Shown: piece by piece, positions 6,189-47,377 of the stretch | Layout of the letters: each line of letters begins with the position of its first letter | Position numbering within the stretch: position 1 is the first letter of the stretch | Origin: Neoechinorhynchus agilis | Taxonomy: Eukaryota; Animalia; Acanthocephala | DNA: 64,000 nt | NCBI GenBank assembly: GCA_051530055.1 | Contig: CM121341.1 | Span: 13,680,784-13,744,783 of the forward strand | Direction of reading: 5' to 3' | Position numbers and translations under genes: made by a program | The notes under the pieces: model-generated | What the model was told of the DNA's origin: nothing | What the model saw: only the letters and a program-made list of their open reading frames with translations | Database searches by the model: none

Positions 6189-9100
6189 CTAAACTTTGAA
6201 ATGCAGAACAGCATTCGCAGCGGTATTTTTAGTGTCCGAGAAAGGTGACACCTCCTCAGTGGGCGTCGTCTCACTATGCAGTCGTGCACCCTTTAGAGCT
6301 GCGAGTATCTCAGCGAACGTTGGCCTGTCGCAAGGTGATTCATACCAGCATTCAAACATCAACGCCCGAATGTGCGGGGACTGTGTGGCTGGAGCTTTAA
6401 GAAGGTTACGATCTCGAAGCCGTTCAATCACTTCGGGGTTTGTATGTCCATCATAAGGCCTTTCTCCGCGTGAGTAAAGTTCCCAAATTAGAACACCAAA
6501 GCTCCATACGTCCGATTGAGTAGTCGATATTCCACTGACCACAGCTTCAGGTGCCATCCACCGAATAGGGAGTAGTTGAAGACTTGGGGAAGCCGACGCG
6601 GAGCTCATTGGAGCCGATATCCGATAATAATCACGCATATATTGACTTCGGCATCTGCCAATATCAAATGAAAGCTTAGCTGACTGTCGAGACTCGTCTA
6701 CTAAGACATTTCTGGCTGCAATGTCTTTATGAACCATTTGCCGACCACTTAAGTACGTCATGGCTGAGGCGACCTGAATGAGCAATGGAAATAGTTCAAC
6801 AGTAGTTGAATCTCCGTCGGAGATGAGCTCATTGAGGTCAAATGGTAGATGATCGAACAATGTTGCAGGAGGATCCGAGCAGAATCCGAGTAGGTTGCAC
6901 AGATGTGGATGTCTCACTGGACTGGAGGTGAGAGCACCGGAATCCGCTAAGAATTGGTCTAAGCGATTCGAGTCTTTTAAGGTCTTTATAAGACATCGCT
7001 GCGATTTAGACGGAGTAGGCATTATCTCACCGATAAAACAAGGTCCGTATCGACCTTGACCAAGTTCAAATAAAAATCGAATGTGATGATACGGAATTTC
7101 CTTGCACCCATTTGACCCCAAGTCGTCTGCATTTGGTGGATGTGACAGGCTATTTCCGACAGATTGTAATGGACTATTACAGTTGTCAGTCATTGGATGC
7201 CGCGACCTGCGATTAGCAAGACAGCTTGAAATAGTCGGACGAATAACGGCCGAAGCTATAACAGGTGGACTAGGTCTTGCTAACATCCTGTCCGGAAACA
7301 CCATTGGGTCCCGTAGATACGAAGGACCAGTTGAACCCATCGACGTCCCTTGACTTGGATACCGTCTATTTTCAAGTAGTTCCGAGCACTCATCAGGAGG
7401 ATGATTAGATAGAAAAGTTGTTCCGAATGAAGTTTGACGTTTTGTTGATCCAACCAAACTACGTTTTGAATTGTTTGATTTTTTCTTCTGAACGGGATTT
7501 CGCCATTTTTTGCAACATAGAAGATACATAAATAAAAGAAGAAGTGCGAGTCCAGCCGGTACCATTATGCTCGGTAATATAACCATCCACAGTTCCGAGC
7601 GAATACCAGCGATAGATGATCCCGCTCCCGTTCCCGAAACAGCCGAACATTTTGGAATAGTGCAAGGTTCAGCGATAGGGTTTCGTTCTCCAAATCCAGA
7701 ATCGACAAAACACCAGGGTTTCCGTTCATCCAATCCATCTCGGGGGTGATGTCCGTAAGAGAAAGGAAACGAATGTATCGGGTTCCTGCAATACTGATGG
7801 TTACCTAATTCTGGATGAAATATGTAAGACAAATGAGCTACTTCTGGCTTATTTGAAGACACCACTGAGTTCCAAGGCAGACATGGTCGTCCACTTTGAC
7901 TCTGACTAATAACACCCAAGTACTCTGTAGTCGAATTGTAGCAATGATGATTGATCTTAGGGCCTAAATGTCGTAACTCGCTCAAGCTGAGACAATCAGC
8001 ATGGCTGCTGCTAGGTGGAAGTTCAGTACAAGTAGGTATTTTCATTCGTTTAAATGGATTAGAAAGTAAAGAAGATGGAGGTGAAGGTAACTTTGCCCGA
8101 GATGACTTTGAATTTTTATACCAGTTATCGACCTTAAGTCACCCAGACCGATCGCTGATGTACATGCGTCTTTTTCAATATATAAGCAGTCTGAAAGGCA
8201 CAGTTGACGTACTCTTGGCCTTTTTAACAGAGGCACAGGATGGACACTTTCATCACAAAGTGGAAATGCGTTGATACAAGCGAGAAACATCGTGGCTTCT
8301 TTACAGGGATCTCGAGCGGCCAACATTGACCCCGTAGGGTTGAATGAAATTGCCGTCGACGATTGGCGGTGATCAAAGTCTGATCCAGCACTCGCGAGAA
8401 GGCGTTCAGTATTCTCCTGCTGAGTGGCGCTGGTCACATAGATCATCCTACTGCCAATTAAGTGCCGGCAGATCCTTCCACGATATGGCTCACAAAAGGC
8501 GTTAGAATCTGTATCATCGGCGAAATAGACTTTATTGGCGAGATCCGGTTTTTCAAGAGTATCATCATCACCACTGTTATTTGAAAAGATGATGAATGGG
8601 ATCGCTAGATTTTAGAAGAAAACACTGACCTATCGATAATTGTATCCTGATATGGCAGATCACCTAAATCAGAACGCTGAGAAAAGTCATAGTCTTCAGA
8701 GTGGTCACCCGAGTCGTATTCATTAAAATCTTCGGACTCATCGCCATAAATATTTTCTTCGTCGACAATTTCAGTCGAGTTTGACAACTTGGACAAGGCA
8801 GTGTTCAAAGATTTCATTCGTTTCAGATTGCGCTCGTATCTATGCGTTTGGTGTTGGTGGTTGTCGAAGGTCAGCAGGCGTGTAAAATCGTTAATGGCAC
8901 CACGCGGCGACCGCAAGAGAGATATTGTGCCGATTAGCGTGTTTGGAATTGAAGGATGGCGCCGAGATTTAATGGATGTATTATGTCAGGAGGAGTATAG
9001 GCAGAAATGTTGTTCTCTCTGTAGTCCCTGAAAACATCTTCCTCCACCTGACGGGTTTTGTCGAACACGAACGCGGGGATATGCGTGATGGGTTGCAGAT

Positions 9101-9800
9101 GTGTCGGTTCCAGCCTAGAAAACAGGATCCGGTATTTATTTTTCTTAAGGGGCACCGATTGGTTCAAGGTATTCGGAATGGCTACAAAACCCCGGACACC
9201 GTTGGCGCGTACTTTTTGAGTATGTGTGTTCTGAATGTTTATTTGACCTGTTTCTCGTTTGGAAGGCATACAAAGAACGACAAAGGAAGTGCCGTTCTTA
9301 TCACGTGCAGTGTGTGCCCGAATCCCTTCCTCCACTTCAGTTCGTCTGTGTATGCGAGAACGAGATGAATAAAACTGACAAATTGGAGCGCCGCACCAAG
9401 TTGACTCTATGTCGTTATTAATATTTGGCTAGTCAGTTGTCCCGGGTGACCACTGCGTCTCCCATACTTACCTAAATTCACTTTTACAATTGAGCTGGCC
9501 GCCTCTTGAATCAGTCCGTTGTTGCAGTCCACTTCACACCGGTAGGAAGCCGAATCCAGGACGTCCGGTTGAAAGATATTAAGTCGTGAGTAAATAGTAT
9601 TTGGTTGGTTGGAGTAGTTGGCGTGGATTGTGTATTTCAAAGAATGACGAATCGGAACTGAGTTGGCAAACCATCGAATCGTGCATTTGAGTGTGGGATT
9701 TAAGGAATCCGGTTTGAGATGGCAGGTGAGTTTGAGTACAAATCCTGTTTTCTCAACGATAGTAACGTTTTTCGGTCTTTCAATCCAAATGAATTTCGCC
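6189..9800 (-). CDS. ROR: Ror-family receptor tyrosine (pseudo)kinase: Ig, Frizzled CRD, kringle, TM, kinase. 5' exons upstream of 9800 and the Ig-CRD linker are unresolved.
   Basis: Ig exon 9800-9472; CRD (FCEPYRGRIC...AFPLCDE...LCLSDC); kringle (CYNSTTEYLG...HQYCRNP...PWCF); TM; kinase HKDIAARNVLV, LPIRWMAPE, SDVWSFGV. Domain order is diagnostic. Confidence 0.93.
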
Positions 9801-12317: not shown

Positions 12318-12743
12318 TCAGTACATCGCCTCGCTAACTTCATTATCATACACATCATCCGTCGGCTCTGGCTTAGTTGCGGTTACATTATTGGTGGCGT
12401 TTATCATGGGTGTTGATCTAATTTCACTGTGCTGATCTTCTCTTAGATTCAAATTTGGTTGGAGATTTGTGGAAAGTGGAGATCGCTTTTGGAATCGAAA
12501 GTCCAATTCATCGGCTGCTTGTCTTTCAAAATCAGGGTGGTCGAGGGTATACGAACCACGATGGCTGCTAATTTTATCCATCATTTTCCCCATTTCTAGT
12601 TGAGAAAGGTCGAGTAGTGCTTTACAAAGACCGAGTTCACCTGAGTAGCGTGTCTTTTTTAGCCCGAGAACTCTCGGCAAACGTGTCTACATTGTGTTTT
12701 GCTAATGGACCTGCAGCTGCGCATTCAAGAAAGGTGAATTCAT
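12318..12743 (-). CDS. Unknown protein, tentative 2-3 exon model (MNSPFLNAQLQ|TRLPRVLGLKKTRYS|EMGKMM...)
   Basis: ATG at 12743. GT-AG introns of 24 and 45 nt are phase-compatible with the 120-aa ORF. No recognisable domain. Confidence 0.4.
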
Positions 12744-14799: not shown

Positions 14800-14890
14800 A
14801 AGTACAAAACGTGCAATCGCCACCGTCCGCAAAATTGGAGCTTGTCTCCTTCCTCGGCTGTCGCTATCATGCTAGCAGCATTGCCTAGTA
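14800..14890 (-). mobile_element. CRE-like element 3' end fragment
   Basis: Near-identical to 24715-24800 (CAAAACGTGCAATC...CAAAATTGGAGCTT...CGGCTGTCGCTATCA...GCAGCATTGCCT). Confidence 0.8.
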
Positions 14891-18647: not shown

Positions 18648-20621
18648 ATGGACAGGTTAGAACTAGAGGACCGACGGGATAACGCTCGGTCATTTCTAAC
18701 CCCAAACAAATCCTTACCGAACAAAGCACAATGGGCCGAATATTGTGAAGTAGGAAATCAATTATTGATAATTGATAAACTGTGAATCTATAGGAGAAAA
18801 TCATTAGTTCCCCATTTGGACCTTTGAGCGTTATCATTCAAGGTAAAAAAGGACTCACGCCGATTTTGACACTTCACGACCTTGGAATGAACGGTAATTG
18901 CTACGTCACCTATACTTTAGACTCTTGTACTCTTTTAAGGACCTAGTCAATTTTTCAATTTCTTTGAACACGACGAGATGAGAAAAATAATGGAACATTT
19001 CTGTGCCTATCATATTACGGCACCGGGCCAACAGGAAGGTGCCAAAACAATCGCTTCCAGGTACCACTGCATTCTTACTTCCAGTCTAATTGATAAATTA
19101 GTGCGAAATATCCCAATGTTGATGAAATGGCCGACATTGTGGACTATGTTGTCGACAATCTCAAGTTGTATTTATTTGCTCGCCGCTTTCACAACCTTCT
19201 GCATCTTTAGACTTATGAGAGTTATTGGTTTCGGTGTAGGAGTGGGTGCTCACGTAATGGCTAAAACCGCTTTATTTTATCCGAACAAGTTCATCGCCTT
19301 AGTCGCCATAAATTGCGTCTGCACGCCTTGCGGATGGGGCGAATGGGCTAATGCGAAGGTATTTGCTGAATATATCATCTTCGTATTGAATTGAAATGCG
19401 AATCACAGTCTTATTCATGATCTGTTTGTAAGCTCATTCTGCTCAAGCTAAAATATCAGATATCCATCCTCATCTTTTCAAAGAACTAACATAAATATCA
19501 GTCTGATTTCACCATCCTTGCAACTCTTTAAAATATATTAGAATCTAGTCTGTTCGATTCAATCATCCCACCTTAGTAAACCGAAAGGGCGAATTGCCGT
19601 GGATTTATCCTAAATGTAACTACAAGTGATGGGAAATCTGTAAAGTACATAACAATCAATGCGTCTGGGACTTGGAAGTTATGATTGGCGACCTAAATTA
19701 GTATTCGAAATTAAGTCTTTTCAAAATTAGCAAACTCGATCCTACCGGAACAAGAAATGTAGCTCAAAAAGATTTTTTGCTTTGCACCTAAAAATTTAAA
19801 ACTTAAACGAAATTCTCGACTTTAGCTGACCGCATTTCATCTAAGAAACGGAGTATTAACTCAAAATGTTCTCAACACTTTAATCACGCATCACCTCGGC
19901 TACGTAAGTTAATCCACATGCAAATTCAATTATCAACTCGCGCTCCTGCAAAAAGGAATCTTCAAATTCACGAACTGATCTTGTGAACATTCTGACCAAC
20001 TACTTTAAAACGTATTTAAATCCTGTTAATTTTGTTAGACTACTGGAAATGTACACCGGGTATCGATTCTCATCTATAAGATCCTTAATCTCGCATACAT
20101 TTTTGTTACTTAGACGCAGTCAATTATCGATTGAACGAAACGAAGAAGACAGCCATGATTATCCAAACTTCTCTTGCAGTGTTATGAATGTGACAAGTGA
20201 TTCCTCGCCGTATCTCGACGATGCAGTCGAATTTAATGGTAGACTGGATCCTTCCAATTCCACTTTCATAAAAGTACACAATTTGTTTCTCATTTTAATT
20301 TAAGTGATCGACTTTTTAAGTTGGCCGAATGCGGTGGACTCATTCTGGAGGAGCAACCGGTACGTTTCACGGAGGCGTTTCTGTATTTTCTTCAAGGAAT
20401 GGGATACGGTAAGCCGATTGCAAATATGGTAATCCATTTTATCTTTTTAAAACTAAGTGTGCAATTTGAGCGTCTCTGCGAATGCGCTCGCATCTAGGAC
20501 TCATCAGAAAATAATCTCAGAACGACTAACTAAGGCGAGGTCAAAAACAATGTGCATGTCCCAACTAAGAGCAGGAATGCATTTGGAAGACGTACAGCCC
20601 GTCCAACCTAAAGAAGTTTAA
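18648..20621 (+). CDS. NDRG: NDRG-family alpha/beta-hydrolase-fold protein, multi-exon; all resolved introns are GT-AG
   Basis: ILTLHDLGMN, HFCAYHITAPGQQEGA, VIGFGVGVGA, LAECGGLILEEQP, FLYFLQGMGY. Introns include 18750-18793, 18894-18939, 19061-19101, 19165-19210, 20060-20113 and 20274-20320. One small exon in 19360-19845 is unresolved. Confidence 0.93.
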
Positions 20622-26065: not shown

Positions 26066-26221
26066 GCAGTTCACTTAAAAGTTTAATGTCGTAAATTAAT
26101 GCTTCAATCGATTGTGATCACCTTCATAAATCTCAAAGCACCCGAAACCAAAACGTATAGATCGATAGAATTTTTAAAATACGTTACTCAAACAGTTAAT
26201 CTTAAATTTTCCCTGCCGTTT

Positions 26222-27941
26222 TTACTTAAGAAGTGCGACAGGCGTCAAAAGGTTCCACATAGATTGTGATTTCTCATAAAGAACTTCCGAAAGGGACACT
26301 TTATACGGAATGCAGCCAAAAGTTCGTTTGTGATCTTCTCGAACATAATCCAATTTCGTCTTTAGCTTTTCTCTGAGTACTTTGATACTAGGGCGCTCCT
26401 TTACGATTTTTCCTTTATCAAAATACAAATCTAAAAGAGATTCAACTCTCTTAGGTCTAACCCTCGCTCTTTTTGAAACGACGAAAGGGTGCCTGATAAG
26501 AAACTCTTTCCCCTCTTCAGGTGCTGGTTCATCATAAGACGTAAGTAGGTCACAAATAGCGATTCCATCTTCACCGAAGAATCTATAAGCTCGCTTCCTA
26601 TAGGGAAGCAGCATCTTAGTGAGATCGTCGCTTACTTTAAGTCTTGGAATGCCGTTTAGTTCGACGAGTTTATAGACGCAACCGAGAGCCGGTTGTTTGT
26701 AACAAGTAACAAGATGGGTGCCAACTCCAAAAGCGTCGATGGAGTTGCGTTGTTCTCTCATTGTAAAATCAGACAAAGACAATCAAACGAATACTCCCTG
26801 TTGTCTATGCTAACATAAAAAGAATATCTTCAGAAATATCGCTACTGGCAACGATCTGTAGATGCTCGAACTCCGGAATCGAATATTGTTTGGACACTTT
26901 TTTAAACCAATTTCGTGATTCATTGGACAAATAAATAAGATCCCCACTATCCAATCGGACACCCACGGGCTTGTAGCCGAGTAGGAAGAGACACAAAGCA
27001 ACCGAACAGAAATTCGCTATACCGCTTTTAAGAATATTGTAAGTATCGATCAAAACAAGAAACCTGTTAGGTGATGAAATTGCATAAGAAATCATAGCAG
27101 CGAATTCTCCCTCATTGCATCCATCTTGAGAACACGAATGTTTAAGCTACAATCCCAAACTAACATTCACGTTCCTTATTGGCATTCCGATCTTTTCTTC
27201 CAAATCGTTTCTCATACTCACACAAAAGTTCTTAAAATCTACCATTGCATTTGTCTTAAGGTTTCTAAGATACGTTGATCGATCACCCAAATCTTTCAGG
27301 TTCTGATAGCTCATAATGAAAGAGTGTGCAATTGTCCCAGACAATGGAATGCCGTATATCTTAGATGCCAAGACATTACTGGTAGAACTACAACCGCCAA
27401 GGAAAGCGTATCTCGATCCAGACAACGCTCCGTTTGGCCCATGAGCTTTGCGTGCTCCAAACTCGGCAATCGGTTTTTCGCCTGCAGCCTGGACGAATTT
27501 ACAGGCGTTCGTTGTTACGAGACTCGCGTAACCGACCAAATTCAAAAGGGCTGTCTCAAGAAGTTGTAGCTTACCAAGCGGACCGGAGACTTGGATAAGA
27601 GGAACATGAGGAAAAACTGGCGTTCCCTCGTCTATTGCATAAAGCTTAACATCATCCATTGTGACTGATTTTAGATAATCATAAAACTCCGAACATACAC
27701 CAGGAAACATCACAGATCGAAGCCACTCTGCATCGTCATTGGTTATTCTGAACTCTTCCAAAAGTTTAAGACAGTCTTCGAGACCTGCAAATACGCAAAA
27801 TTCACCTCCAAATGGGCATTTGCGGAAAAATATTTCGAAAATTGCATGATCGGTATGTTTTCCCGTTTGCCAATACGCGTGAACCATGGTGAGTTCGTAG
27901 TAGTCAACTAGAAGGGTAATCGGTCTTACGCAGTTGTCCAT
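26222..27941 (-). CDS. NAPRT: Nicotinate phosphoribosyltransferase, 3 exons; both introns lack a homology-preserving GT-AG placement
   Basis: DYYELTM, EFGARKAHG, GTIAHSF, LIDTYN, GVRLDSGDL, IDAFGVGTHLVTC, LGCVYKLVE. Confidence 0.95.
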
Positions 27942-28781
27942 CTATAAAGCGAATTTTTTTACGAGAGTCGCGCATTTGATTATTTAGAACAAATCGGACA
28001 TTGCGGCGAAATGTTTGTGTTTGTATCTGGCTTAAAAAATTAAAAGAATTTATGGATTCCAACATTTCACAGGCGCATTCTTATGCCTTTATCAAAGTTG
28101 TTAAAGTGTCTTATACAAATAAAATCGATTCCCGGTTAGAATACATGAACCAAATAAATTATTACCTAATTTCGATATCTTCTCATAGAATAGTCAAATA
28201 CGCACAAATGCGTTGCTCGGAAAAGGATGATCTTGCAGTCAAGAAAAAACGCGGAGGCGTACACGAATGACAAAGACGTCAAACGATCCGTCGGATGTAA
28301 AAGACACGGGAAAGTTAGGTCGATCCACCAGACCTGAATTAAGATCGCTTCGATATTTCCTAATTGCACGAAACTTCGTTCTTTCTTATTGTAAAGCCTA
28401 TTGGATAATGCAGAAATCGATAATCTTTCAAAGAACGGATTATGTTGATTTAAAACGTTTCATTAAATGTTTTTTCCGGCAAGCCGGTTCTATTGATTCT
28501 GATTTAGGGCATCCCTTCCTCGGCTTTATAGTTTTTCCCGTCTTGGTAAGAATCCACACCGATCTCTTACATTAGTTTCTTCGTTGGCTTTGGGAGATTT
28601 TTTAAATGGAACGCGTATTGACATTATATGCGATTATTAAACGCAATTGATAGATTGATTAATTTTTATAAGTTTCTTTTCTAAAAGGAAATGATGTTTC
28701 ACTGATTTTCGTTGTTTAAAAAATGTTACGGTGAAATTGTTCTTTGAACATTGATCGAAGTGAATGAAACTTTATATGAAC

Positions 28782-30275
28782 CTATTTTCGCGTTCTGAGT
28801 AGTGAAATATCCTAAGAATATCTTCAACAACACAAGTAGTGAATTTTATTTTTCCGAAATTACCTGGTTCATAGTTTCGTACATTCGCCTCATTTCAGCT
28901 GCTACATCCATAACCATTTCCCACTTTTGCCTCTTGTCCGCCTCCTCTTCCATTTTCGTTCGTTGGACTTCTCGCACTTTATCCACAAGACCTACAATTT
29001 GTCGATTTAGCTGTTCTCTGTACAACTGAAAATTTGCCGACTCTTTCTGATAATCACGGAGTACTTTACTTAGAGAGCTATTGTCTTTCTCGAGCCTCAC
29101 TATTATGAAGATCAGTTTCTTAAAGACTTTTTTGACATCTTCGCAACATAAAGTATTAAGAGTACAAAAGGTTTTTAAACAATCGGTGAGTGCCTCATAT
29201 TCTATCGCAATTGCGTTTCGGCTATTGATCAATCCTTGAAGCTCATATGCGGATAAATCCACTTCTTCGCTAATATTTGCATTATCGAATACATGGAGAA
29301 ATTTTGAAGAATCCATGTGTTCGGTTAACTTCCGAATGCCACTCTGATACTTTTCTAGTAAAGACAATTTACTCTCGAGCATTTTGTCTGTATCACGATC
29401 TACTATTTTGCTTCCAATTCTATCTTTCTTTTCAATGATAATCTTGTCGTCGAGTAGTTCTTGATAATCACGAAGCGAGTTATTTGAATCGCTCTATTTT
29501 TGAAAGAATAAAATTTATCAATAATACTTGGGGACCGTAATTTAAGTATCGTATAAAATTCAATATAGGATTATTTTACGAATACAAGCCCAAAATCTAA
29601 ATAAAAATAATGTAGAGCGTATCATTTACGCTCGAATTTGAGCAGCTCAATCGTCATCTCCTTTGAAGTTAAATCATTTACGTACTCCTTGTTACTGGAA
29701 TCCATCGCCACAGTCAGAGACCGAACGTTCTCCACTAACTCGTTATTCTTTGCTTTTTCTGACACCAATCGCGATTCCACTTCGTCGCGCGATGCCTTTA
29801 AGGATTCAAGTTCTTTTGAAAGTAAAACATATTCATCTCTACTTGTAGTCAGATTATCTTTCAGCAGCTTTATCTCCGTTTCCATATTTGCTTTCTCGAG
29901 CTTTAATCCTTGCAAACTCGTTTCACAACTCACGTGCTCCACTAAATAAGTTTCTAATCGTTCACATGCAACTCCCACTTCTGATCTGTACTTATTTGAC
30001 GCTAATTTTAACAAGAGATTTTCACACTTTAAATGTTCGTTAACTCGACGCAATTCCTTTATCTTTTCAGCACATTTCGACAAATCTTGTCGAAAACTAT
30101 GTTCAGTTGTGTTATAAAGCTGCTTATCAGTGTCTTTAAATACTACGGCGCAATCCACCAAATCACGATTAACTACCTGAATGTTCTTATGATTGTTCAA
30201 TTGACGTTGCTTTACACTTAAATCACTTGAATTATTGGACAACTTGGAGAGTTCGTTGCCCTTTCGTCTGCCCAT
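28782..30275 (-). CDS. Unknown coiled-coil protein, 3 exons
   Basis: Two long heptad-rich ORFs (29622-30275, 28846-29382) plus a last exon 28811-28782 after GT-AG intron 28863-28812. Confidence 0.7.
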
Positions 30276-30796
30276 CTCCGATAAAGCATTCGAAACAAAC
30301 GTTTTCGCTGGTTAAAGTGTCACTTAGCAACAAATGCGGATGAAGATTTTTTAAGGTGGTTAACGGCTTTCTCCATCGGTAAGTTTCTGTAAAGTTTAAC
30401 GAAACAAATTAAACGTGCTTTTATGTTTCGGATAGTGAACATATTGAATCGCAAAGTGATCCGCAAACGGCCAGGCAGCATTTCTGTAAAAATTATATTC
30501 GATCGTTCTTCAAGGCCTATGGCAAAATTTTAGAAAAATGATTCAATAGGATTGCTTTTCGTATCTAGAATATAATCAATGTACACTCCGCTTCTACTAT
30601 TAAGATTTTAGAAGCGATGAATAATGCTTAACTTTATTTTTGGCTGATCCTTAGATATAATCGATTTTGAAAACTTTTTTGTAAGAATTAACAACACTTA
30701 TGCGTGTTGATGGAATACAAACACCGAAATAGAAAAAAAGCTAGTTTCTCTCACATAAATCATCGGATTATGGACTGACAACAAACATTAACTATA

Positions 30797-31766
30797 TTAT
30801 CGTGGCCTGAAACGCGGCACCGGGTACCGGAATCTGGGCCTCGCAAATCGATACAATGGTACTCGAGGTCGTCTACCTCTTGCGGTTCTGTTAGATCCGA
30901 GCAGAGGAATTAAACTTGCAACTGCAGCGAGAATTCCAACAAGTCCAAAAAGTCCAAGAAACACCGAGGGCACAATTACGGCGGCACGGTAACGATTGGC
31001 GTTTGGATTTGTGGTAAAAGCTTTTGGACACTTTGAAGCATGAACATAACTCAAATAAATTACTAACGGCAAAATTCATCCGGAGAAAAGCATGGGTCAA
31101 AAAGATTAGTGGTATTCCCTGGACAAAGTACTCCTGTGCCACTTCCATCATAGAGAGTGCAACGTGTCAGAGTTTGGGTCTCACTACCTTAATTTTATCT
31201 TTTTGAGCGAAGATTGCGATCGATGTAAACTAACAACAAGTTGCTTGAACGATGGTTGAAGGGCATGAGACTTGTAAGTTGACTGGTATTGAAGTTCCGG
31301 GACATTCCGCGCGTCCTTTAAGAGGAAAAATCCAGTATGGTTATCCGCCAGGTGCAACTCACTGCATAAATCGGCGGTTTTAAAGCAATTACTTCCACTT
31401 GATGTGACATTGCCCGTACATAAGATTCCAGTACCGAAGTCGCAGGTTGTCAGTATGTTCGTACGGGAACCTAGATCCTAAGTTATTGAGTTACTTGAGG
31501 TATATAGAAAACGTACAGCAAATGACCGTGACTTGAACGCCATTACAAATGGCTTGTCCATTAATTTGAAAAATACCAGCAGTACCGAAACATGGATTTC
31601 CCTGCCCTCCTGTTAAATGTTAAATACTTTTTAATCATGAAGCAATCATGAGCTTACTCGCTGAAGGATTCAATAGAATTGACAGTAGAATCACGGCTAT
31701 TCAAAGTGCATATGCTTGGATTAAGAAAAATCCATAAATTCAAAAACACATACCTCCAATAAGCAT
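30797..31766 (-). CDS. Cys-rich repeat single-pass membrane protein (start uncertain)
   Basis: Phase-1 GT-AG introns separate alternating Cys-rich exons. The final exon gives AAVIVPSVFLGLFGLVGILAAVASLIPLL followed by an Arg-rich tail. Confidence 0.65.
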
Positions 31767-32184: not shown

Positions 32185-32535
32185 ATGCAAGACGCGATAA
32201 GCAATTTAAGAGAACGATACCATCAAGTATTTAATTCAATCGATACTCCAATGCGATTAATGGGAAAGTCGTATACAAATAAGAGGCTGAAAACTGTGCA
32301 ATGTGCAGGGGGAATAAAAATGAAATCTTTGTTAGTCACATCTGAGAAAAGGCCATTCTTTAAATGTTTAGACGCTAAAAACCACTTTATTGTTAACTGG
32401 AGGCTCGACGAACGCAAAAAAAGATCTCGTTTAAAAAGTGGTCTGTTTTACGATAAGAAAACGCAGAAATTCTTAGACTCATTCTTAATAGTGACAAATT
32501 CCACATTTCGGCTGGAATTCCTTTGGACGAAATAA
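32185..32535 (+). CDS. Hypothetical basic 116-aa protein
   Basis: ATG-initiated ORF between two genes; no homology recognised. Confidence 0.3.
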   Translation: MQDAISNLRERYHQVFNSIDTPMRLMGKSYTNKRLKTVQCAGGIKMKSLLVTSEKRPFFKCLDAKNHFIVNWRLDERKKRSRLKSGLFYDKKTQKFLDSFLIVTNSTFRLEFLWTK

Positions 32536-32760
32536 GCATTGTCTTAGCGTGCGCAAATCATTTCGCAAAAATCACTCCTCTAGATCACAAATGGTTTTCG
32601 ATCATCCGGACGGCGCAAAATCAATAAAGTTCAAACAGCGAAACTGCAATGATTCCTATTTAACTGAAATGGTTTCTCCGTCAATAAATGGCGGAACATT
32701 ACTGAAAGAATGGAATGGATTATAGCCGAGATTCGCCGGTCACCTTCGGTTCCTAGCAAG

Positions 32761-35700
32761 ATGGTTGACATTGAAGATGCTGAAGAGATTGAGATAGATG
32801 ACATCGAGGCTTATGAACTTCCACCATCTCAGCAATATAATTTCTCGCAGTGTTCAAACAACGTGCCGGAAAATCGTCTAATAATCCATACAATTGAATT
32901 GGAAAACTTTAAGTCTTATGGCGGTCGACAGGTTCTTGGTCCGTTTCATGACCGATTCTCGTGCATCATCGGCCCGAACGGGAGTGGGAAATCCAACATC
33001 ATCGATTCGATGTTGTTTGTATTCGGCTATCGAGCCCAGAAAATTCGAGGAGCTAATCTCGTGTCGCTTATCCATTCAAGTCCTTCAATTCCAAACGCAC
33101 AAAACTGTTCCGTTACCATTAACTTCAGACTTATTAAACATATTAACGAAGATGTGGACGAAATCGGTATTGATCACCATGTGATCGAGGCTTTTACTAT
33201 TTCGAGAACGGCTTTCGCTTCCGGTGGATCGACTTATAAAGTAGGCAAAATGAATGTGGTATTCTCGGAATGTGGATTCGGAAAGTTCTTGCTGAATATC
33301 GCATTCGTTTTTGATAAATGGGCGCGAATCGAGGTTCACTGATGTTCAAAACAAACTAAAATCTTTTGGAGTTGATCTCGTTCATAATAGGTTCTTAATT
33401 CTTCAAGGTGAGGTTGAACAAATCGCCGCCATGAAGCCTAAAAAGGAACACGAAAACGGCACAGGGCTTGTCGAATACCTTGAATCATTAATTGGCACCG
33501 ATCGATATATTAGACCGATAGAGTTAGCTCAATCCAGGTACGATCAACTTGAAGATGAACGACTTGAGCACACAAATCGAGTTCGTATTGCACTCAGCGA
33601 GTGTAAAGCTCACGAAGAGTCTTACTATCGTGCGATTGATTTTATGATGAAAGAGAATTTACTCAATTCTCTACAAAAACGATCGTTTGAGCTGGAGTTA
33701 AACGAAGTTAATCATATTTTTGAAGACAATTCAGCTGCTTTAAAGGCTGCCGAAGACGAACTTGGACTAATAGAGCAGAAACTGAATCAGTGCAAAATGG
33801 ATCATGATGAAAAGAAGAAACACGCGGAGAAAGCGAATGCGAGTTTGGCCAACGATACAAAATTACTTGCTTCATTAAAGGTGAAATATACTAAAATGGA
33901 TACGCAGGATTCCCAAAAGCGTAGTGAGGTGGTTCAGAATGAGAAATCGATTGAGGAAATTGACAAAAAGGTTGAAAAAGATCGAAACGAACTTAAAAAA
34001 CTGGAGAAGAAAGCACAAGAGAAACAGAAAGAGTTTGAGAAAGGTAATAAATTAAACGAATTGGAGGAGCAAGCCAAATATGCGGCAGGGCGTTTAAATG
34101 AAATGAATGACAAGGCAGTTAGCGATACTCGCGAAATCCAGCAAAGACTCGAAATGGAACATGGTAAAATGATGTCTCACCATCCAGCATATTCTGCAGC
34201 CGAGCAAAAACTTGAAGGCGCACTGAATATCCAACGAGCAACTAATGATGATCTTGAAAGTGTTTCCCAGAAGCACGAGGAATGTCTTCGTCAAATCGAT
34301 GAAATTGGTGAAACACTTAGAAGACTGGAGGCCGACGAAAGCATGAAGAAGACAGAGTACAATGAAATCGTGCAAAAATTGAGACATTTAAATGAACAAA
34401 TAACATTGAAGCGGAAACTTTATAAGACAAAACGCGATGAATTTGAAACAGTCAGTGAAGAGTTAAATATTCAGAAGCGTTGGAAGGATGCGAACATGTC
34501 GAGAAACGCGGTTCTCGGATTTCTCAGGGATCAAGAGGGGAAGGGCGAATTGACAGGCTTGAGAGGTCGTTTAGGAGATTTGGCTTATGTGGATCCCAAA
34601 TATGATGTGGCCGTATCCACTGCAGGCGGTGGATATCTGGATTATATCGTGACTAATACCATAAATCAGCAATTTTCCAGCGATGGTTTTCGTATCTAGT
34701 TATTGAATTTATAAGCGCTATTATTTTCCACAGTTAATTGAGCAGCATAAAGAGGTCATAAGTTAATTTCATCTAAATAGAAAAAGTTGAATGATTGCTG
34801 AAATAAAAGAAGCTAATCGGTGCATTGAATTGCTCAAACGCCATAATGCCGGCCGTACGACGATCATAGCTTTGGATCAGCAGAAATCGAAATGGCAGAA
34901 TGTGATGTCTAGACCGTTCAATTGTCCAATGATTGACAACGGCGTAGAGAGGATATTCGACATTCTTCAGGTATCGCATCCAGATATTCTTCCTGTGTTT
35001 TATCATGTGTTTCGCGACACTCTAATGTGCCCCCTTTTGAACATTGCTGACCGAGTAGCTTTCCAAGGTTCAAAGCGATTCCGCGTTGTTACATACCAAG
35101 GTCACCTATTTGAGACAAGTGGAACCGTAACAGGAGGTGGGCAGCCGCGACGGGGTAAGATACTTACTTCATCCGGAGCAGGGCCAAAGTTAATGGACGC
35201 AAAAGATTTCTCTTCTCTGGAAAATCGAATCTCGCTTCTTCGAGCAGAGGTTGAAGATATTCGTTCAAGTGTTGAAGAGATGGAGAATGATCAGTCGGGC
35301 TTGTCGGTAAAATGGGAAGAGCTAAAAAGTGAGCTGGGACGAGTTAAAGTTGAACTCGAAACGCAAAGAAACCTTTTGCCAAACAAGAAGCGCGAGTTAT
35401 TGTTTTTGGCGTCAAAAAGGGATGAGTTGATTCAACAAAGAAACAAATTGAAGCATTACGATGCGGAAATTGAACAACTTAAGAAAGAGTTTGACAGTAT
35501 TGCCCAGGTGTACAATGCAGCCAAAGAATCGGCGGATCAGTTGAAACACGAATTAGAATCGAAGACGGAGGCGATTGTGAGTGATGCAAAACGCGAATTA
35601 GTTTTAGCCGAGGATGAAGCTTTAAGGGAGAAGAAAAGGTTTGAGAGCTTGCAGGTCGTACTAAAGTTAATACCTAAACAGAAGCTGACTATTGAAAAGC

Positions 35701-36860
35701 GAATCGGTGATAGGATTAGCGAACGCGACAAATTGATTCAACTAAACAAGAGATTGAACAAAGAGATTGAAAATTTATCGCAAATGTCAACTGAGTTGGA
35801 GGAAGAGAGAAAAACGGTGGAACTAAGATGCTCCGAATTGAATAATCAGATGCATCAATTGGAGAATGAATGTAGAAAGATATTTGAGGAGATATCGAGG
35901 TTCGAGAATCAAAATATTGATAATCGAGAGAAGTGTACTCGCCTTGGGAAAAAAGTCGATGAAATGAATGTTGTGCGAAAGCGAATTTTTGAGCATTTAA
36001 ATGGGCTCGTGTTTCATAAGATAGAGGAGGAGGAAGATGACGATCCAGACGACAAGGTAGACAAAGAGGAAGTGCATGATGATGATTTAAAAAAGAAGAT
36101 AAACGAGCTTAAATCTCAGTTAAAGAACGCAATGCCGAATCTCGGCGTTGTTAAAATTTATCGGCAGAAACGAGCTGTTTTTAAGAAGAGAGTAGCTGAA
36201 GCCAATGTGCTTAATCAAAGACTTGAATTAGTCTTACAAAAACTTCTTACTTTGAAAAATCGTCGGTTGGATGAATTTACGAAATGTTTAAACATGATTT
36301 CAGCTAATCTGCGAAATATTTTTCGACAACTTACAATCGGCGGAGATGCTGAGCTTGAGATGGTGGATTCTTCGGATCCGTTCAGCGAAGGAATTGATTT
36401 TAGTGTTCGCCCACAGAAAAAGTCTTGGAAAAAGATCGCTAATATTTCAGGAGGTGAAAAGACTTTGAGTTCATTGTCGCTGATTTTCGCACTTCACTTG
36501 TTCAAACGAACTCCTCTTTATTTTATGGACGAGATCGATGCTGCTCTTGATTTTAGAAACGTTACTATTATTAGGAATTATGTGAAGGAATGTACTAAAA
36601 ATGCACAGTTTGTCGTTGTTTCCTTGAGGCAACAAATGTTTCATGGAGCAAACCGAGTTACGGGTGTTTCAAAAATGGACGGGATTTCCCATACTGTCAC
36701 TTGTATAAATAATGTTCTTATTATCAAGACCAAAAGAAAGACGAATAGAACGATTTTCAAACGAAAAATCACCAAAGATGATGATGGAGATGAGAATGAA
36801 GGAAGTTGTGCTAAACAGTCAGCATCAGACACGGCATGCGAAGTGAAATCTGAAAGGTGA
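32761..36860 (+). CDS. SMC4: Condensin subunit SMC4, 3 exons, two non-GT-AG hairpin introns (start at 32761, or upstream in-frame ATG 32710)
   Basis: ENFKSYGG, Walker A GPNGSGKSN, HNRFLILQGEVEQIA, hinge GRLGDLAYVDPKYDVAVST, signature SGGEKTLSSL, Walker B YFMDEIDAALD. Confidence 0.97.
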
Positions 36861-38235
36861 TTAATGTTTTGGATGCGAACCTTGGATGGGGCAATGAATC
36901 TGTTTCGATTTTTAAGCACGTATTTCTTAACAGCCATTCGATAAGTTCTCTTCTTATCTGAGGTCTGAAGCTTACATTAATGATTCGGAAATTCTTGCAA
37001 TTGAACTTTTTAGTGGCATAATTTCTATAGATACTTTTGAAATGAAATAGTAAACATTTCACATTGGGAAAATTTCCTTCGAAATTGAAAACAAAACCTT
37101 ACACATTTTAGAATGCAACTAATGCTCATATATTAGAAATTATTAGGGACGACGAACACAGTATTTGGAGTTAAAAATCACGGCAGCGCCATCTTTGTAC
37201 GTTGAAACGATTTTATTTTTAGCTCTGGTTAGACGAAATCTTTATGCAGAGCATTTGATTCGAAGTTAATGGATTTGCATTCACAATTATTTTCTAAGAC
37301 AAGGTAAATTGACTGAGTTGATTGAGTATGAGCGTTGGCGCCATGAAAAAAATTCTACTGAATATTTGTTATACAGATCGTCAAAAAATTATTTACAATT
37401 TCTGAAGATTAGGATAAAAGAGTTAAGGTTAACCGTTCACCGAAATTTCAACAAGAAACGCTAAGTGACCATCGGTTGCAGTTTAACATTTTATTTAATA
37501 AGAATAAAGGTTTACAAGAAACAAAATACATTTTATTTTCAAAGTTAAGATTTAATATGCTAGAAAGTGTGTCGATGATGCTTTCTGAAAGTTCTGAAAT
37601 TTTAAGGCTTACAAGAACTTAGCCTGCTGCTTTGATAAGCTCGATTTTACAACTGTACGCGATGAATGCAAGAGCTTTCTTTATGAAGTGCGATTGAACA
37701 AAATAATCATTGCGTTATATCGTTTGAAGGGTGAGGTAGAGTAATTCCGCAATAGAAACAAATAACCAAGTATCTTATTGTGGACGACCAACACACACAA
37801 AACGTGAGAGACAAAAAAATAGTTGTAGTAAGAGACAAAAGCGATGTACCTCAATGTACTTGCAGCCGCTGGGATATCCTTAAGATGTATTCATTGATTC
37901 CTTTTATCACAGCATTCCAATTATCGCATTTTATTATATCCTGCATAAATTTCGAGGCCATCTTTTCAAATCTGTAATTTAATTGAACTCGAGAGCTTAA
38001 ATACTGAATGCGAACCTATGATATTTGTGGAATCAGAAAAAAATAAAGAATTTAGTCGCCGGTAGTTTGAAATAATGTATTCTGATTCCTAGTACTCCAA
38101 GTATGAATGCGAAATTGCGATGTAATAATCTTCAGTCCTCCTTCAATAATAACTTCATCCTAGAGGTAAGTCCGTTTATTGCGAATCTCTGATCGATTGA
38201 CATTCAGAAGACCCCAAAGGTATTGGTAGAAGATA

Positions 38236-38526
38236 CTAGTAACACTGGATGTTCAAAAAGTCAAAAGTGACTCTTTGACTATCCCATCTTTTTATGTGAA
38301 TTATTTCTAAGTTTGTTTTCTTTAAATGCTGCGTTTCAAATTTGTTGTATGAAACTAGGAATGCGATCGCTCTTAGGGGTTCTACATCCTCAGCATGGTT
38401 TTGTGGCAGCTCGCATGAATCCAATGAAAGCGATAAACACAGCTTAATAAAAGGAAGTTGACCGACTATCGATAATGTTTCAGTGGAAGTTACACATTTC
38501 ACAGCCTTTTGTTGATGATAACTCAA
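38236..38526 (-). mobile_element. Possible decayed hAT-like transposase relic
   Basis: YHQQKAVKC...SIVGQL...LRAIAFL loosely resembles the N-terminal region of hAT transposases; no termini seen. Confidence 0.25.
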
Positions 38527-38753
38527 GTCGACACATCCTTTTTAAGAACAACATTGCCTCCCTGATAACTGTCGTTGCTCATAGTTCATCGCACGTTCCG
38601 GTTTTCACTTGAACAAAGCTTTTCACGCCCTCTAATCAACAAATGAGTAATTTTCGTGCCTTAGATGTTACAAACATTCTCCAAGTAGTCCCAGTTCGTC
38701 AGAACTTCATTCAAAGATATTTTGGTCTTTAGATCTTTTCACTCCAAATTGCA

Positions 38754-40837
38754 ATGTGTGATCCAGAACAGCATATTAAACGCCTCATAGAAGAGCACGG
38801 CTTCGAAATAGATGATCCACGTGTGGCTGAGGTACTAGACGATCAAAACAAGGACGTTAATGAATTCAGAAAACGATTCCTCGTTCCTCATGTCCGTGAC
38901 CTTCCAGGTGATCGTTCTAGAAAAGCGTTTTCCCTATAACTCAGATCTGATTTTTATTTAGTCGAGATTGAATTACCGCCGGAACAAGAAATCGTGTACT
39001 TTTCGGGACAATCACTGGGTCTTCAACCGCGAGAAGTGATGGAAAATATCAGAGATGAATTAAATAAATGGGCAACGATGTAAGTGATTGAATATACAAA
39101 ATTTACTCGACAAAAAAACATCGGCACATGTGGGTCGGTGATTTGAAACTAAGGGCTGAATTAGTTTTAGAACTTGAGTATGTTAAAATGCAAAATGTAC
39201 TAGAGTTGCAACTGTAGGGTGAAATTAGTCAAAATTTAAAATGAAAGCTTTGAATAAAAAATTGTATCTAATAATATAGGGGAGCATTAGCTCATTCGGT
39301 TCCAAGCGAGCCGTTTAACGCCTGCGACAAAGTACCAATACCCCTCATGGCTTCGATGGTTGGAGCATTGGAATCTGAAGTTGTTCTTATGAACACCCTA
39401 ACAGCTAATCTTCACATAATGCTGGTTGGTCTTCTACTCATTTTCGATTTTGGACAGTTTCGAAATAGGAATTCTTTTATGAGCCCAAAGAAGAGAAAAA
39501 CAAAATCATTTACGAGGAACACATTTTCCCTTCTGACAAGGTATACTCGCTTTGTTTTATTTTCCGAATTCCAGCCAATCGCCGTACAGTACGCGATTGA
39601 TTCGGTTTGCCGGAACCATGGATTAGATCCAAATAATGTTTGTTTGTGCGTCAACACTTCTCAGGTTGCATCATATATTTTTTGTTTAATCTCATTCAAC
39701 TGAAAACAGCCGCTAAAATCAATTCTCGAATTCATTGACCATCACGGCCATGAAACGGCTTTGATATTGATTGGAAACGTTCAGTTTTATACAGGCGCAA
39801 ATGTCGACATTCGGGAAATAACCGAATGTGGTCATCGACATGATGCGATCGTTGGCTTTGATTTAGCCCATGCTGTACTCACAGCGATTCTTAAGGATTG
39901 CGCTTCTAAAATAGAATCGTTTGTTTCTAGGCAATGTTGCATTGAACTTACACGAAGATGACGTTGATTTTGCGGTTTGGTGTACTTACAAGGTATTGAA
40001 GTTTCTTCAGTCCGTATTTGTATTTCGGTCCTTAGTATTTGTCAGGTGGCCCAAGCAGTGCAGGTGGAATGTTCATCCATGAACGACACTTCAATCGAGA
40101 AGGCAACCGACTGGATGGATGGTGGGGAGCAACGATGAACTCTAGATTTGACACTAAACCTGGTATGAGATTTTGTTGTCTTAAAGAGTGAAAAAACCAA
40201 TTCAGCAATTGAGCGCGAGTACGGAGCTGCTGGTTTCAGAATGAGTCATCCATGCCCTTTCCAGACAAAACCGTTGCATACCTCTTTGAAGGTGAGTTGA
40301 GCCCAAAGGTGTACTTGAACGCTATTGATTTGTAAGTTATTTTCGAATTTTATCCCTTGAGAAATAAAGCAAACGAAGCCTTCATAAACAAAGAGTATCT
40401 TGTGTACTTTAATTATAATTTAGATCTTCGAAGAAGCAGGATTCGAAAAGTTGTACTCCAAAGGCAGGCTGATGTCACAATACCTTCTTATGTTGCTAGA
40501 AAAAAATGTCAAAGGTAAATCGTTCCTAGGAAATTATCTGAAATATTCGGTCATAAAAACAAGGAGTGGAAATCATAACTCCGTTGGACTCAAAGTTGCG
40601 TGGAGCGCAAATTTCGTTTCGTCCACCAGAGCCATTTGGTGTTGCGGAAATCAAATCAGAGTTGTATAGGCGAGCAATTATCGTAAGCATATATTGATAG
40701 ATCTCGAAAATATTACCAAATCAATATAGGTTGATGGTCGTGGAGATGTGGTTCGAGTTGCTCCTGTTCACGTTTATAACACTTTTGAAGAAGTGTTTAG
40801 ATTTGTCAAGGCCCTCAAAGACATAACGAATTGTTAG
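38754..40837 (+). CDS. KYNU: Kynureninase, 12 exons (10 GT-AG introns, 1 non-canonical)
   Basis: YFSGQSLGLQP, MNTLTANLH, FPSDKYAI, FDLAHAVGN, WCTYKYL (PLP lysine), RVAPVHVYNTFEEV. GT-AG introns 38908-38961, 39080-39279, 39425-39468, 39541-39589, 39665-39709, 39993-40035, 40163-40205, 40292-40423, 40515-40563, 40683-40729. Confidence 0.96.
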
Positions 40838-47194: not shown

Positions 47195-47377
47195 ATGTAG
47201 CAACACAGAGATACCGAAAAGTTACCGACTAGCAAGGCTTCAAAAATAAAGATCATTAATAAGGATAAATCAAAGCGCCTGAGATGAATAAAAGATCAAG
47301 GATCTGACACATTTAAAACTTACAAACATAATTTGCAAACAATTAATTTACAAGCAAAAACTTACAAGCAATCGGCA

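Follow-up and report, generated by a model that had tools for sequence, protein, structure and literature searches.

Hairpin-forming inserts in four conserved genes of Neoechinorhynchus agilis point to structure-guided RNA excision alongside ordinary GT-AG introns

Introduction

The closest described system to the elements reported here is SOS splicing, a hairpin-triggered, RTCB-dependent and apparently spliceosome-independent pathway that removes transposons with inverted repeats from RNA in C. elegans and in human cells (Zhao et al., Nature 2025, PMC12779559). Its substrates are exonic rather than intronic; the excision points fall within or close to the ends of the repeats, and few of them are GU-AG (PMC12779559). 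The hairpin elements of N. agilis resemble these substrates in their animal host, in inverted-repeat pairing as the putative trigger, in their exonic position, in the rarity of GU-AG ends and in the restorable frame of the interrupted gene. They differ in that the demonstrated SOS substrates are Tc1, Tc3, Tc4 and Hsmar2 insertions, either recent or engineered, whose ITRs are long (54 nt in Tc1), whereas the N. agilis elements are tiny, unique, diverged (G·U) and fixed in conserved coding exons. SOS splicing is also imprecise, with many isoforms, and its three validated endogenous C. elegans targets are UTRs or a pseudogene, while the N. agilis genes would need largely precise removal. The initial annotation of this DNA, in listing known systems, missed SOS splicing (PMC12779559).

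Non-canonical introns of the dinoflagellate Amoebophrya carry inverted repeats of 8-20 nt at their ends and direct repeats of 3-5 nt at their boundaries, as the present elements broadly do, and have no consensus dinucleotide (Farhat et al. 2021, PMC7789003); a hairpin has been proposed to join the exon ends, and canonical introns coexist (PMC7789003). More than 60% of introns are non-canonical there and some belong to repeated families (PMC7789003), whereas the N. agilis elements, in an animal, are a minority (six, where the window has at least 19 canonical introns) with no family copies seen. In the protist Euglena, nonconventional introns are co-dominant (72%), lack GT-AG ends, require pairing of the intron ends and have short direct repeats that make their junctions slidable; they follow a code of a 3-nt spacer, CAG...CTG, a 5-nt spacer and an exon that starts with a purine (PMC12501133). 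Among animals, Fritillaria borealis has abundant non-GT-AG introns and short introns, and transposon-derived introns are discussed as a source (Henriet et al. 2019; PMC13326754). Non-canonical introns make up 95% of the total in that species and have been ascribed to a modification of the U2 spliceosome (U2AF, snRNA m6A), and end-to-end hairpins are not given as a defining feature (PMC13326754). In the literature we found no report of hairpin-bounded non-GT-AG introns in Acanthocephala. The 2019 work on Fritillaria by Henriet and colleagues is said to have raised a possible link to MITEs or hairpins.

Results

The window, 64,000 nt of chromosome DNA from Neoechinorhynchus agilis (Acanthocephala), holds the genes Ror, NAPRT, SMC4 and KYNU, whose identities were confirmed with Pfam and homologues. 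Six small hairpin-forming inserts interrupt them, one in Ror, two in NAPRT, two in SMC4 and one in KYNU; all six interruptions named in the initial annotation are present. Five are frameshifts, while the first NAPRT interruption is an in-frame TAG only.

6189..8817, minus strand: Ror receptor tyrosine kinase gene (Fz CRD, kringle, TM, kinase), as far as annotated; ORF 100% identical to NCBI ACOME3_003218 of N. agilis, Pfam Fz match in the ORF at 8045-8611, tblastn alignment with Pomphorhynchus laevis Ror
8096..8148, minus strand: Ror hairpin element; frameshift between the last CRD cysteine and NPFKRMKIP
26222..27941, minus strand: NAPRT gene; Pfam NAPRTase_N and NAPRTase_C, translation, homologues
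27129..27175, minus strand: NAPRT_a hairpin; 14-bp stem with 3 G·U around the in-frame TAG
26765..26816, minus strand: NAPRT_b hairpin element; 52 nt, six registers within 26764-26820
32710..36860, plus strand: SMC4 (condensin) gene; Pfam, homologues; 1311 aa after excising both elements
33241..33313, plus strand: SMC4_a hairpin element; GT..TG in its only register, 73 nt, stem of about 18 bp including 3 G·U
34661..34802, plus strand: SMC4_b hairpin element; 142 nt, six equivalent registers, up to 34666-34807
38754..40837, plus strand: KYNU (kynureninase) gene; 12 exons, 10 GT-AG introns (43-200 nt) plus the hairpin element
39877..39928, plus strand: KYNU hairpin element; 52 nt, 11-bp stem, TA..TA flanks, three registers in 39876-39929

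Homology fixes the excised segment at four of the six sites, namely the 73-nt and 142-nt elements of SMC4 and the 52-nt elements of KYNU and NAPRT_b, and their removal gives gapless alignment to orthologues; none of the registers permitted at these four sites is GT-AG, GC-AG or AT-AC. Excision of SMC4_a restores STYK|INGRESRF with no gaps against seven orthologues, that of the KYNU element restores the invariant DLAHAVGNV, and that of NAPRT_b yields a length equal to that of human, P0177 and P0179. SMC4_b splits the Pfam SMC_hinge, positions 2-37 of which end at 34660 while position 40 restarts at 34809. An example of a hairpin-defined junction is ...tcgacttataaa|ataaatgggcgc... The view that stops and frameshifts are cured by excising 51-142 nt with non-GT-AG ends holds at the four sites fixed by homology, but not distinctively at NAPRT_a. 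Because this last interruption is an in-frame TAG only, its excision must be a multiple of three, of about 54-60 nt somewhere in 27111-27182, and the segment first proposed, 27117-27177 (61 nt), is out of frame, off by one. A 60-nt GT..GAG intron, 27170-27111, fits as well as any other excision, and from its sequence NAPRT_a can be an ordinary GT-AG intron. The Ror excision has a length of 2 mod 3, with 53, 56, 59, 62 nt and so on all permitted, so that its ends are not fixed; a GT-AG excision that keeps RQLCLSDCLYIEKDAC and the Frizzled CRD cysteines was sought there and none exists.

The element ends pair at all six sites, with stems of 9-18 bp where 8-18 bp had been claimed; that of Ror has 13 bp with 3 G·U and runs from the element's first base to 8095, and the terminal stem of SMC4_b is UCAGCAAUU/GAUUGCUGA. 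Comparison of end-pairing energies within the window gave a mean of -14.9 kcal/mol for the six elements versus -6.5 kcal/mol for 19 GT-AG introns (Mann-Whitney p=2.3e-5); relative to random segments of matching length from the window, the p values of the individual sites were 0.012-0.17. In a strand-symmetric alignment of the arms, mismatches comprise nine G·U-type versus one A·C-type transitions on the transcribed strand (p=0.011), which bears out the reported G-U compatibility of the stem deviations, and the sense MFE is far below the antisense in five of the six elements. This bias fits a constraint on RNA structure, not the decay of a DNA repeat.

Direct repeats of 4-5 nt, claimed for three of the elements, were recovered as 5-nt repeats at SMC4_b (ATAAA) and NAPRT_b (TTTTA, spanning both junctions), but KYNU has 2 nt (TA) and SMC4_a has 0 nt, yet with ATAAA on both exon sides. 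The TA..TA flank of KYNU and the two 5-nt repeats look like target-site duplications, one copy of which would be kept in the mRNA. One register of SMC4_b, AAU-CAG...CUG-AAAUA|A, matches the Euglena code exactly, and NAPRT_b (AUGU-UAG...CUG-AUUUU|A) and KYNU (ACU-CA.A...UUG-UUUCU|A) come near to it, whereas SMC4_a, Ror and NAPRT_a fall outside it.

In P. laevis the exons are uninterrupted at three of the sites. NAPRT, in which the two hairpin elements are the sole interruptions in N. agilis, is a single intronless exon in P. laevis, and KYNU of P. laevis lacks an intron at the element site, although at least six other intron positions are common to both species; the elements are therefore lineage-specific insertions. 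No second copy of any element was found in the 64 kb, the elements have no sequence in common and no recognisable transposon termini were seen in the six, so that a transposon origin is unproven. The genes are under selection: each SMC4 element is followed by an ORF without stops, of 467 and 689 codons, and the conserved domains go on beyond every element.

Discussion

The intact long downstream ORFs in four conserved genes, the gapless restoration of motifs, the end-to-end stems with strand-specific G·U pairs and the empty P. laevis sites together point to hairpin-guided removal from RNA at non-GT-AG sites, in a genome that also has ordinary short introns of the GT-AG kind; we infer both the excision in RNA and its exact junctions from sequence. 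The reading we favor, with a probability of about 0.55, is that fixed inverted-repeat insertions are lost from the RNA through structure-directed splicing, to which SOS splicing comes closest. On this view, the lineage of N. agilis would have acquired single-copy insertions with inverted repeats, only about 52-142 nt long, within coding exons, and these would have gone to fixation. In the transcript the two arms would pair into a hairpin and so place the ends of the flanking exons next to each other; the RNA would be cut within a few nucleotides of the stem base and rejoined at non-GT-AG sites. The most likely candidate machinery would be the animal SOS route, in which paired inverted repeats are recognised, the RNA undergoes endonucleolytic cleavage, and RTCB, with AKAP17A and CAAP1, ligates the ends. 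SOS-type removal would run constitutively and precisely enough to give in-frame mRNA, and, with each element gone from the transcript, the host genes would keep their function.

As to the second, structure-guided splicing route originally proposed, the sequence evidence fits hairpin-guided RNA removal, but this does not extend to NAPRT_a, which may be GT-AG, or to the Ror ends, and the route is probably not new as a mechanism, because SOS splicing already gives animals a hairpin-triggered, RTCB-dependent one (PMC12779559). The novelty, if the reading is right, would lie in the taxon and in the constitutive action of such a route on elements fixed within conserved coding exons. Several features sit uneasily with an SOS-like route: the stems span 9-18 bp against 54-nt ITRs, published SOS splicing is imprecise where essential genes need mostly precise products, SMC4_a has no junction repeat, and NAPRT_a is explicable without it. 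At four sites the inferred 5' junction has a GT no more than 2 nt away, and the lengths are intron-like, which a hairpin-assisted spliceosome would fit too.

Such hairpin-assisted splicing, in which a lineage-relaxed major spliceosome would use non-consensus sites juxtaposed by the stem, as proposed for Amoebophrya and Fritillaria, we consider possible but unlikely. The element lengths (about 52-142 nt) fall within the canonical range of 41-467 nt, SMC4_a and the Ror element as first annotated start with GT, a GT lies 2 nt from the 5' junctions of KYNU and NAPRT_b, and Amoebophrya non-canonical introns combine the same classes of inverted (8-20 nt) and direct (3-5 nt) repeats without a consensus dinucleotide (PMC7789003). 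However, the 3' ends of the elements have no AG or pyrimidine-tract signature, the putative GT donors of NAPRT_a and KYNU lie within or adjoin the stem, and the spliceosome does not look relaxed, given that the 19 canonical introns found in these genes start cleanly with GTA... and end with YAG or AAG.

Ordinary GT-AG introns as in the NCBI models, with lineage-specific protein indels and incidental hairpins, are improbable. Frame-preserving alternatives exist at five of the six sites, all but Ror, where none keeps the CRD, and that of NAPRT_a fits as well as any excision; those of KYNU and the SMC4 N-terminal part are used by NCBI models. Among the alternatives, 33285-33333 at SMC4_a adds 8 aa and destroys the Y-x-I-N-G motif, 34686-34809 at SMC4_b adds 6 aa, 39875-39914 adds 4 aa inside the invariant LAHAVGNV of KYNU, and the 58-nt GT..GAG of NAPRT_b, 26814-26757, deletes 2 aa. 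The 4-8 extra residues would stand inside invariant motifs uninterrupted in every orthologue, three of the alternatives need a GAG acceptor, used by 0/19 canonical introns of the window, and BRAKER uses neither that at SMC4_b nor that at NAPRT_a. End-to-end stems at all six sites and the G·U bias would be left unexplained.

A cause in the DNA itself (assembly artefacts, polymorphic null insertions, recent pseudogenisation or germline-limited, IES-like sequences eliminated from somatic DNA) is very improbable. The boundary repeats TA..TA, ATAAA and TTTTA are the footprint expected of transposase-type precise excision, and the DNA came from whole worms (PMC12690905). The assembly is, however, a hybrid MaSuRCA assembly polished with Illumina reads, the six sequences are distinct, with none adapter-like or repeated, and old pseudogenes would not have kept such long ORFs beyond the elements; the strand bias of the G·U pairs indicates RNA, not DNA, and six null alleles in four conserved genes, SMC4 included, within 32 kb of one haplotype are implausible. 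Translation without RNA removal, by ribosomal bypass as in T4 gene 60 or as split polypeptides such as SMC4 halves, is scarcely credible: the direct repeats would let take-off and landing codons match at SMC4_b (AUA/AUA) and NAPRT_b (UUU/UUU), and SMC4_b has an ATG at its 3' end in a gene that NCBI annotates as two, but matching codons are absent at SMC4_a and KYNU, the cuts would pass through the KYNU PLP site and the SMC4 hinge, and we know of no report of cytosolic animal ribosomes bypassing 52-142 nt.

The hairpin elements already break the public gene annotation of N. agilis. BRAKER/NCBI models fail at every site, with SMC4 split, NAPRT truncated and fused, KYNU lengthened by 4 aa and the end of the Ror CRD lost; BRAKER, run with RNA-seq hints, identified no canonical intron that it could use at SMC4_b or NAPRT_a, and its models end at stops inside the elements. 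The transcriptome scores higher than the genome in BUSCO completeness (metazoa 54.9 versus 47.1%, eukaryota 71.0 versus 58.4%; PMC12690905), a difference that we count in favor of RNA-level excision.

Six interruptions in conserved coding exons

Six short elements interrupt four genes identified by Pfam matches and protein homology as Ror (Fz, kringle and kinase domains), NAPRT (N- and C-terminal domains), SMC4 (SMC_N and hinge) and KYNU. All six fall inside conserved coding sequence, in exons and outside the spliceosomal introns:

8096-8148, minus strand: element in Ror
26765-26816, minus strand: element in NAPRT (NAPRT_b)
27129-27175, minus strand: hairpin of the other element in NAPRT (NAPRT_a)
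33241-33313, plus strand: element in SMC4 (SMC4_a)
34661-34802, plus strand: element in the SMC4 hinge (SMC4_b)
39877-39928, plus strand: element in KYNU

The long Ror ORF (6192-8138, minus strand) matches the N. agilis NCBI protein ACOME3_003218 at 100% identity, and its next relative by protein homology is that of Pomphorhynchus laevis, at 38% identity. In addition to several retrotransposons, the window carries the genes for cofilin, NDRG and POLR2K and an upstream gene for a coiled-coil protein; neither an Rfam scan nor a tRNA scan of its whole length gave a match. KYNU (38754-40837), rebuilt by hand, has 12 exons; ten of the interruptions between them are GT-AG introns (43-200 nt) and one is not. 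With seven further GT-AG introns in NDRG, one in Ror and one in the coiled-coil gene, very short spliceosomal introns of the form GTA.../[CTA]AG are therefore the majority class. At 18894-20320 and 38908-40729 these canonical introns are extremely short (mode 41-56 nt), with GTA-rich 5' ends, TAG, CAG or AAG at the 3' ends, and scant pyrimidine tract and branch-site consensus.

Protein homology fixes the excised segment at four sites. At SMC4_a, frame 3 upstream finishes with ...STYK and frame 1 downstream starts with ING RESRF...; excision of 33241-33313 (73 nt, GT..TG), which has a sole register (placement of the excision), is gapless against seven metazoan SMC4 proteins and regains the Y-x-I-N-G motif. 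The sole frame-preserving GT-AG option (33285-33333, GAG acceptor) adds eight residues and loses this motif. At SMC4_b the Pfam hinge model halts at position 37 (nt 34660) and restarts at position 40 (nt 34809); with 142 nt removed the alignment reads TNT/IKEANRC without a gap, in six equivalent registers allowed by an ATAAA repeat, none of them canonical, while the GT-AG option adds six residues. Removal of 52 nt from KYNU (three registers, through TA..TA) regains DLAHAVGNV, which is unbroken in every homologue aligned, namely a 63%-identical relative, P. laevis, bdelloid rotifers and a bacterium; the NCBI model takes a 40-nt GT-AG option that places NRLFL where V should stand. At NAPRT_b the spacing equals that of human NAPRT and of the homologous proteins P0177 and P0179 once 52 nt are removed (six registers, through a TTTTA repeat), and a 58-nt GT..GAG option loses two residues. 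The junctions predicted from homology after excision are tcgacttataaa joined to ataaatgggcgc for SMC4_a, gtgactaatacc to ataaaagaagct for SMC4_b, agcccatgctgt to aggcaatgttgc for KYNU and gatattcttttt to acaatgagagaa for NAPRT_b.

The initial annotation described all six elements as having non-GT-AG ends, and this stands at the four resolvable sites, where no register has GT-AG or GC-AG ends; at NAPRT_a such ends are possible. The sole defect at NAPRT_a is an in-frame TAG, so the 61-nt excision proposed there cannot be right; a comparison of spacing with P. laevis points to about 60 nt, and no choice fits better than a 60-nt GT..GAG intron. Because the flanking protein sequence is variable, homology settles the length class of the Ror excision (2 mod 3) but not its ends; a search for GT-AG excisions that keep the last cysteines of the Fz cysteine-rich domain found none. 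The NCBI model of Ror (6189-8817) drops RQLCLSDCLYIEKDAC, loses the Fz Pfam match and lacks the end of the domain. NCBI/BRAKER models split SMC4 (32710-36860) into two genes of 646 and 689 aa, and the NCBI model of NAPRT (26222-30311, 678 aa) joins its N-terminus to the upstream coiled-coil gene and stops at the TAG inside NAPRT_a. BRAKER, which used RNA-seq hints and canonical sites only, has a wrong model at all six sites.

Two database matches are recorded here in their own right. The top SMC4 match, an 'UNVERIFIED_CONTAM' Acipenser entry, was considered as an acanthocephalan contaminant and rejected, being a fish SMC4 with a duplicated hinge. The metaclust kynureninase P0052 (449 aa) is 63% identical to the N. 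agilis protein, against 41% for P. laevis, and presumably comes from an unsampled acanthocephalan or close relative.

End-to-end pairing of the elements

A terminal stem of 9-18 bp joins both ends in 6/6 elements, with end duplex energies of -10.7 to -17.4 kcal/mol that random same-length segments of the window reach at a frequency of 0.012-0.17 per site. The mean duplex energy is -14.9 kcal/mol for the six elements and -6.5 kcal/mol for 19 GT-AG introns of the window (best -11.3; Mann-Whitney p=2.3e-5). In a strand-symmetric alignment of the arms, nine transition mismatches are of the G·U type and one of the A·C type (p=0.011), and the sense strand folds much more strongly than the antisense strand in five of the six. 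This is the pattern expected from pairing kept in the transcript, and not from a decaying DNA inverted repeat. The end pairing of all six elements and the G-U compatibility of its deviations on the transcribed strand, both noted in the initial annotation, are borne out, as is the contrast with GT-AG introns, noted there for KYNU.

The signal sits in the end-to-end pairing; whole-element MFE z-scores against shuffles are weak. An ungapped stem scan of the whole window gave a modest excess over shuffles (e.g. 24-28 against 12-14 at the top threshold), which indicates that hairpins of this size are not rare genome-wide and that only site-specific tests are meaningful. A search for junction duplexes in pairs of adjacent ORFs was discarded because its windows overlapped. 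At the four resolvable sites the junctions predicted from homology are 0-6 nt beyond the base of the stem. A fixed rule of cutting 3 nt and 5 nt from the stem works only when the closing pair is picked by motif; it is not robust and hence a lead only.

Proposed removal of the elements from RNA

The six interruptions are real, as first observed, and differ statistically from the surrounding ordinary introns; a putative structure-guided removal from RNA is the best reading of their sequence and predicted pairing. A homology search for transcript-derived N. agilis proteins (Logan, TSA) matched only genome-derived NCBI models at ~100% identity; the RNA-seq project dates from 2025. BUSCO completeness is higher for the transcriptome than for the genome, which is expected from interrupted exons, though not specific to them.

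A serious rival is that the spliceosome, aided by the hairpin, removes the elements. Four of the 5' junctions have a GT at the junction or no more than 2 nt away, and the elements are of intron-like length. Branch-site motifs are uninformative, since they are weak even in the canonical introns. For minor spliceosomal removal of the AT-AC type, neither the [AG]TATCCTT 5' site nor the TCCTTAAC branch site was found in or beside any element. The CNGNNGN motif of IRE1 (XBP1/HAC1-type) processing is absent at both junctions of all elements, and the junctions flank one long stem, with no sign of the bulge-helix-bulge of tRNA endonuclease substrates (two 3-nt bulges with a 4-bp helix between). Indel errors are unlikely because the hybrid assembly was polished with Illumina reads, and at KYNU and SMC4_a a canonical intron could not be regained through any single indel. 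Long, conserved stretches free of stops follow the elements: they measure 467 and 689 codons in SMC4, and in NAPRT, KYNU and Ror they take up the entire C-terminal half. Old pseudogenes are thereby excluded.

Relation to known hairpin-dependent systems

The closest known system is SOS splicing, in which exonic DNA transposons of C. elegans and human cells are excised from mRNA once their inverted terminal repeats pair; the several excision sites, rarely GU-AG, lie within or close to the ends of the repeats. SOS splicing spares intronic copies, depends on AKAP17A, CAAP1, RTCB and SUT-2 and is apparently independent of the spliceosome, and its endogenous coding targets and evolutionary role are stated to be open (PMC12779559). 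All of its features that sequence can test are found in the N. agilis elements, namely pairing inverted repeats, exonic position and, at the homology-inferred junctions of the four resolvable sites, non-GU-AG ends near the termini. By contrast with SOS substrates, the N. agilis elements are tiny, unique, diverged with G·U pairs of the compensatory type, and fixed in conserved coding exons, and their excision would have to be mostly precise; SOS splicing as published is sloppy and yields several isoforms.

Two protist systems offer parallels. Amoebophrya introner elements have inverted repeats of 8-20 nt with non-canonical ends and boundary direct repeats of 3-5 nt; in line with this pattern, inverted repeats occur in 6/6 N. 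agilis elements, and three of the four resolvable ones also carry direct repeats, two of 5 nt and one of 2 nt. The nonconventional introns of Euglena follow a code of paired CAG at +3 and CTG at -8, with spacers of 3 nt and 5-6 nt and a purine opening the exon. One register of SMC4_b matches it exactly (AAU-CAG...CUG-AAAUA/A) and NAPRT_b and KYNU come near; SMC4_a, Ror and NAPRT_a do not fit, so this likeness is only a lead. The downstream exon can begin with A at all four resolvable sites (33241-33313, 34661-34807, 26764-26820 and 39876-39929). Three elements finish in a Euglena-like YUG plus 5 nt (CUG-AAAUA, CUG-AUUUU and UUG-UUUCU); SMC4_a does not.

By analogy, structure-guided removal would probably follow the SOS splicing pathway, which was published in 2025. 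In the full proposal, hairpin-guided, spliceosome-independent cutting and RTCB ligation of the SOS type would serve as constitutive and precise intron removal for conserved N. agilis genes, and inverted-repeat insertions would thereby have become a second, stable intron class in an animal, with the partly Euglena-like geometry suggesting that hairpin splicing is ancient, widespread in eukaryotes and able to create introns. We regard this proposal as tentative, with a probability of roughly 0.3. If structure-guided removal does occur, these elements would be natural substrates for SOS splicing, and the pathway would be able to let insertions persist within conserved exons, a route from transposon to intron. 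N. agilis would also represent, next to the larvaceans, a second lineage of animals with its own class of non-GT-AG introns, here structure-defined and alongside normal-looking spliceosomal introns.

Fixed, hairpin-defined introns in conserved animal genes appear to be new: a full-text literature search on Acanthocephala and non-canonical introns found nothing relevant, and the word 'intron' is absent from the published descriptions of the N. agilis genome and transcriptome. The public annotation of SMC4, NAPRT, Ror and KYNU is wrong at the element sites; canonical-only gene finders may therefore account in part for the very low genome BUSCO and for the massive gene loss published for acanthocephalans.

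Origin of the elements

In P. laevis, NAPRT is one uninterrupted exon (WNNJ02002970.1, 2001-3713), and the KYNU exon is continuous across the element site, with at least six other intron positions common to both species. At least three elements are therefore lineage-specific exon insertions. In Ror of P. laevis, a canonical phase-1 intron of 2.4 kb sits nine codons from the element site; the Ror and KYNU genes of that species span 25 kb with long introns, and its NAPRT is intronless.

The initial annotation reported direct repeats of 4-5 nt at the junctions of three elements. Repeats of 5 nt are present at SMC4_b (ATAAA) and NAPRT_b (TTTTA), KYNU has only 2 nt (TA..TA), and SMC4_a has none. 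At KYNU, SMC4_b and NAPRT_b the flanks resemble target-site duplications that would leave a single copy in the mRNA. Of two further hallmarks of MITEs or DNA-transposon relics, an empty site in a relative is seen (P. laevis NAPRT and KYNU), and multiple related copies are not seen within the 64-kb window, where a search for a second copy of any element found none. The six elements have no sequence in common and no shared or recognisable termini; as they are also single-copy in the window, a transposon origin is no more than plausible.

Other repeats in the window were noted. A 3.5-kb segmental duplication (44781-48288 and 55407-58917, 95% identity) carries an unknown ORF family of 141-163 aa, of which another, partial copy lies at the window start (74-1021), as well as a TM-like ORF, also unknown. 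A 27-nt indel at 46337 in one copy of the duplication adjoins an in-frame stop (46336-46338). No hairpin-type filled and empty sites were found between the copies, and a search with the repeated 141-aa gene for further N. agilis sequence matched only the window itself. An unknown gene, probably for a membrane protein, at 30800-31477 (minus strand) has no homologues and is split into ORFs 31187-31477 and 30800-31075; an inverted repeat with 19-nt arms (31088-31106 and 31197-31215) spans the break and is a candidate seventh element. Nested MITE-like inverted repeats at 42340-42830 (arms of 17-43 nt, including some of 30-43 nt, 73-94% complementary) lie just downstream of POLR2K, an intact single-exon gene (~42962-43145, minus strand), and may be in its 3' UTR. 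Two large, near-perfect inverted repeats, at 52611-52929 (114-nt arms, 99%) and 54505-54734 (91-nt arms, 89%), sit in the retrotransposon-rich, GC-richer 47-63 kb region, which contains reverse-transcriptase and integrase-like ORFs.
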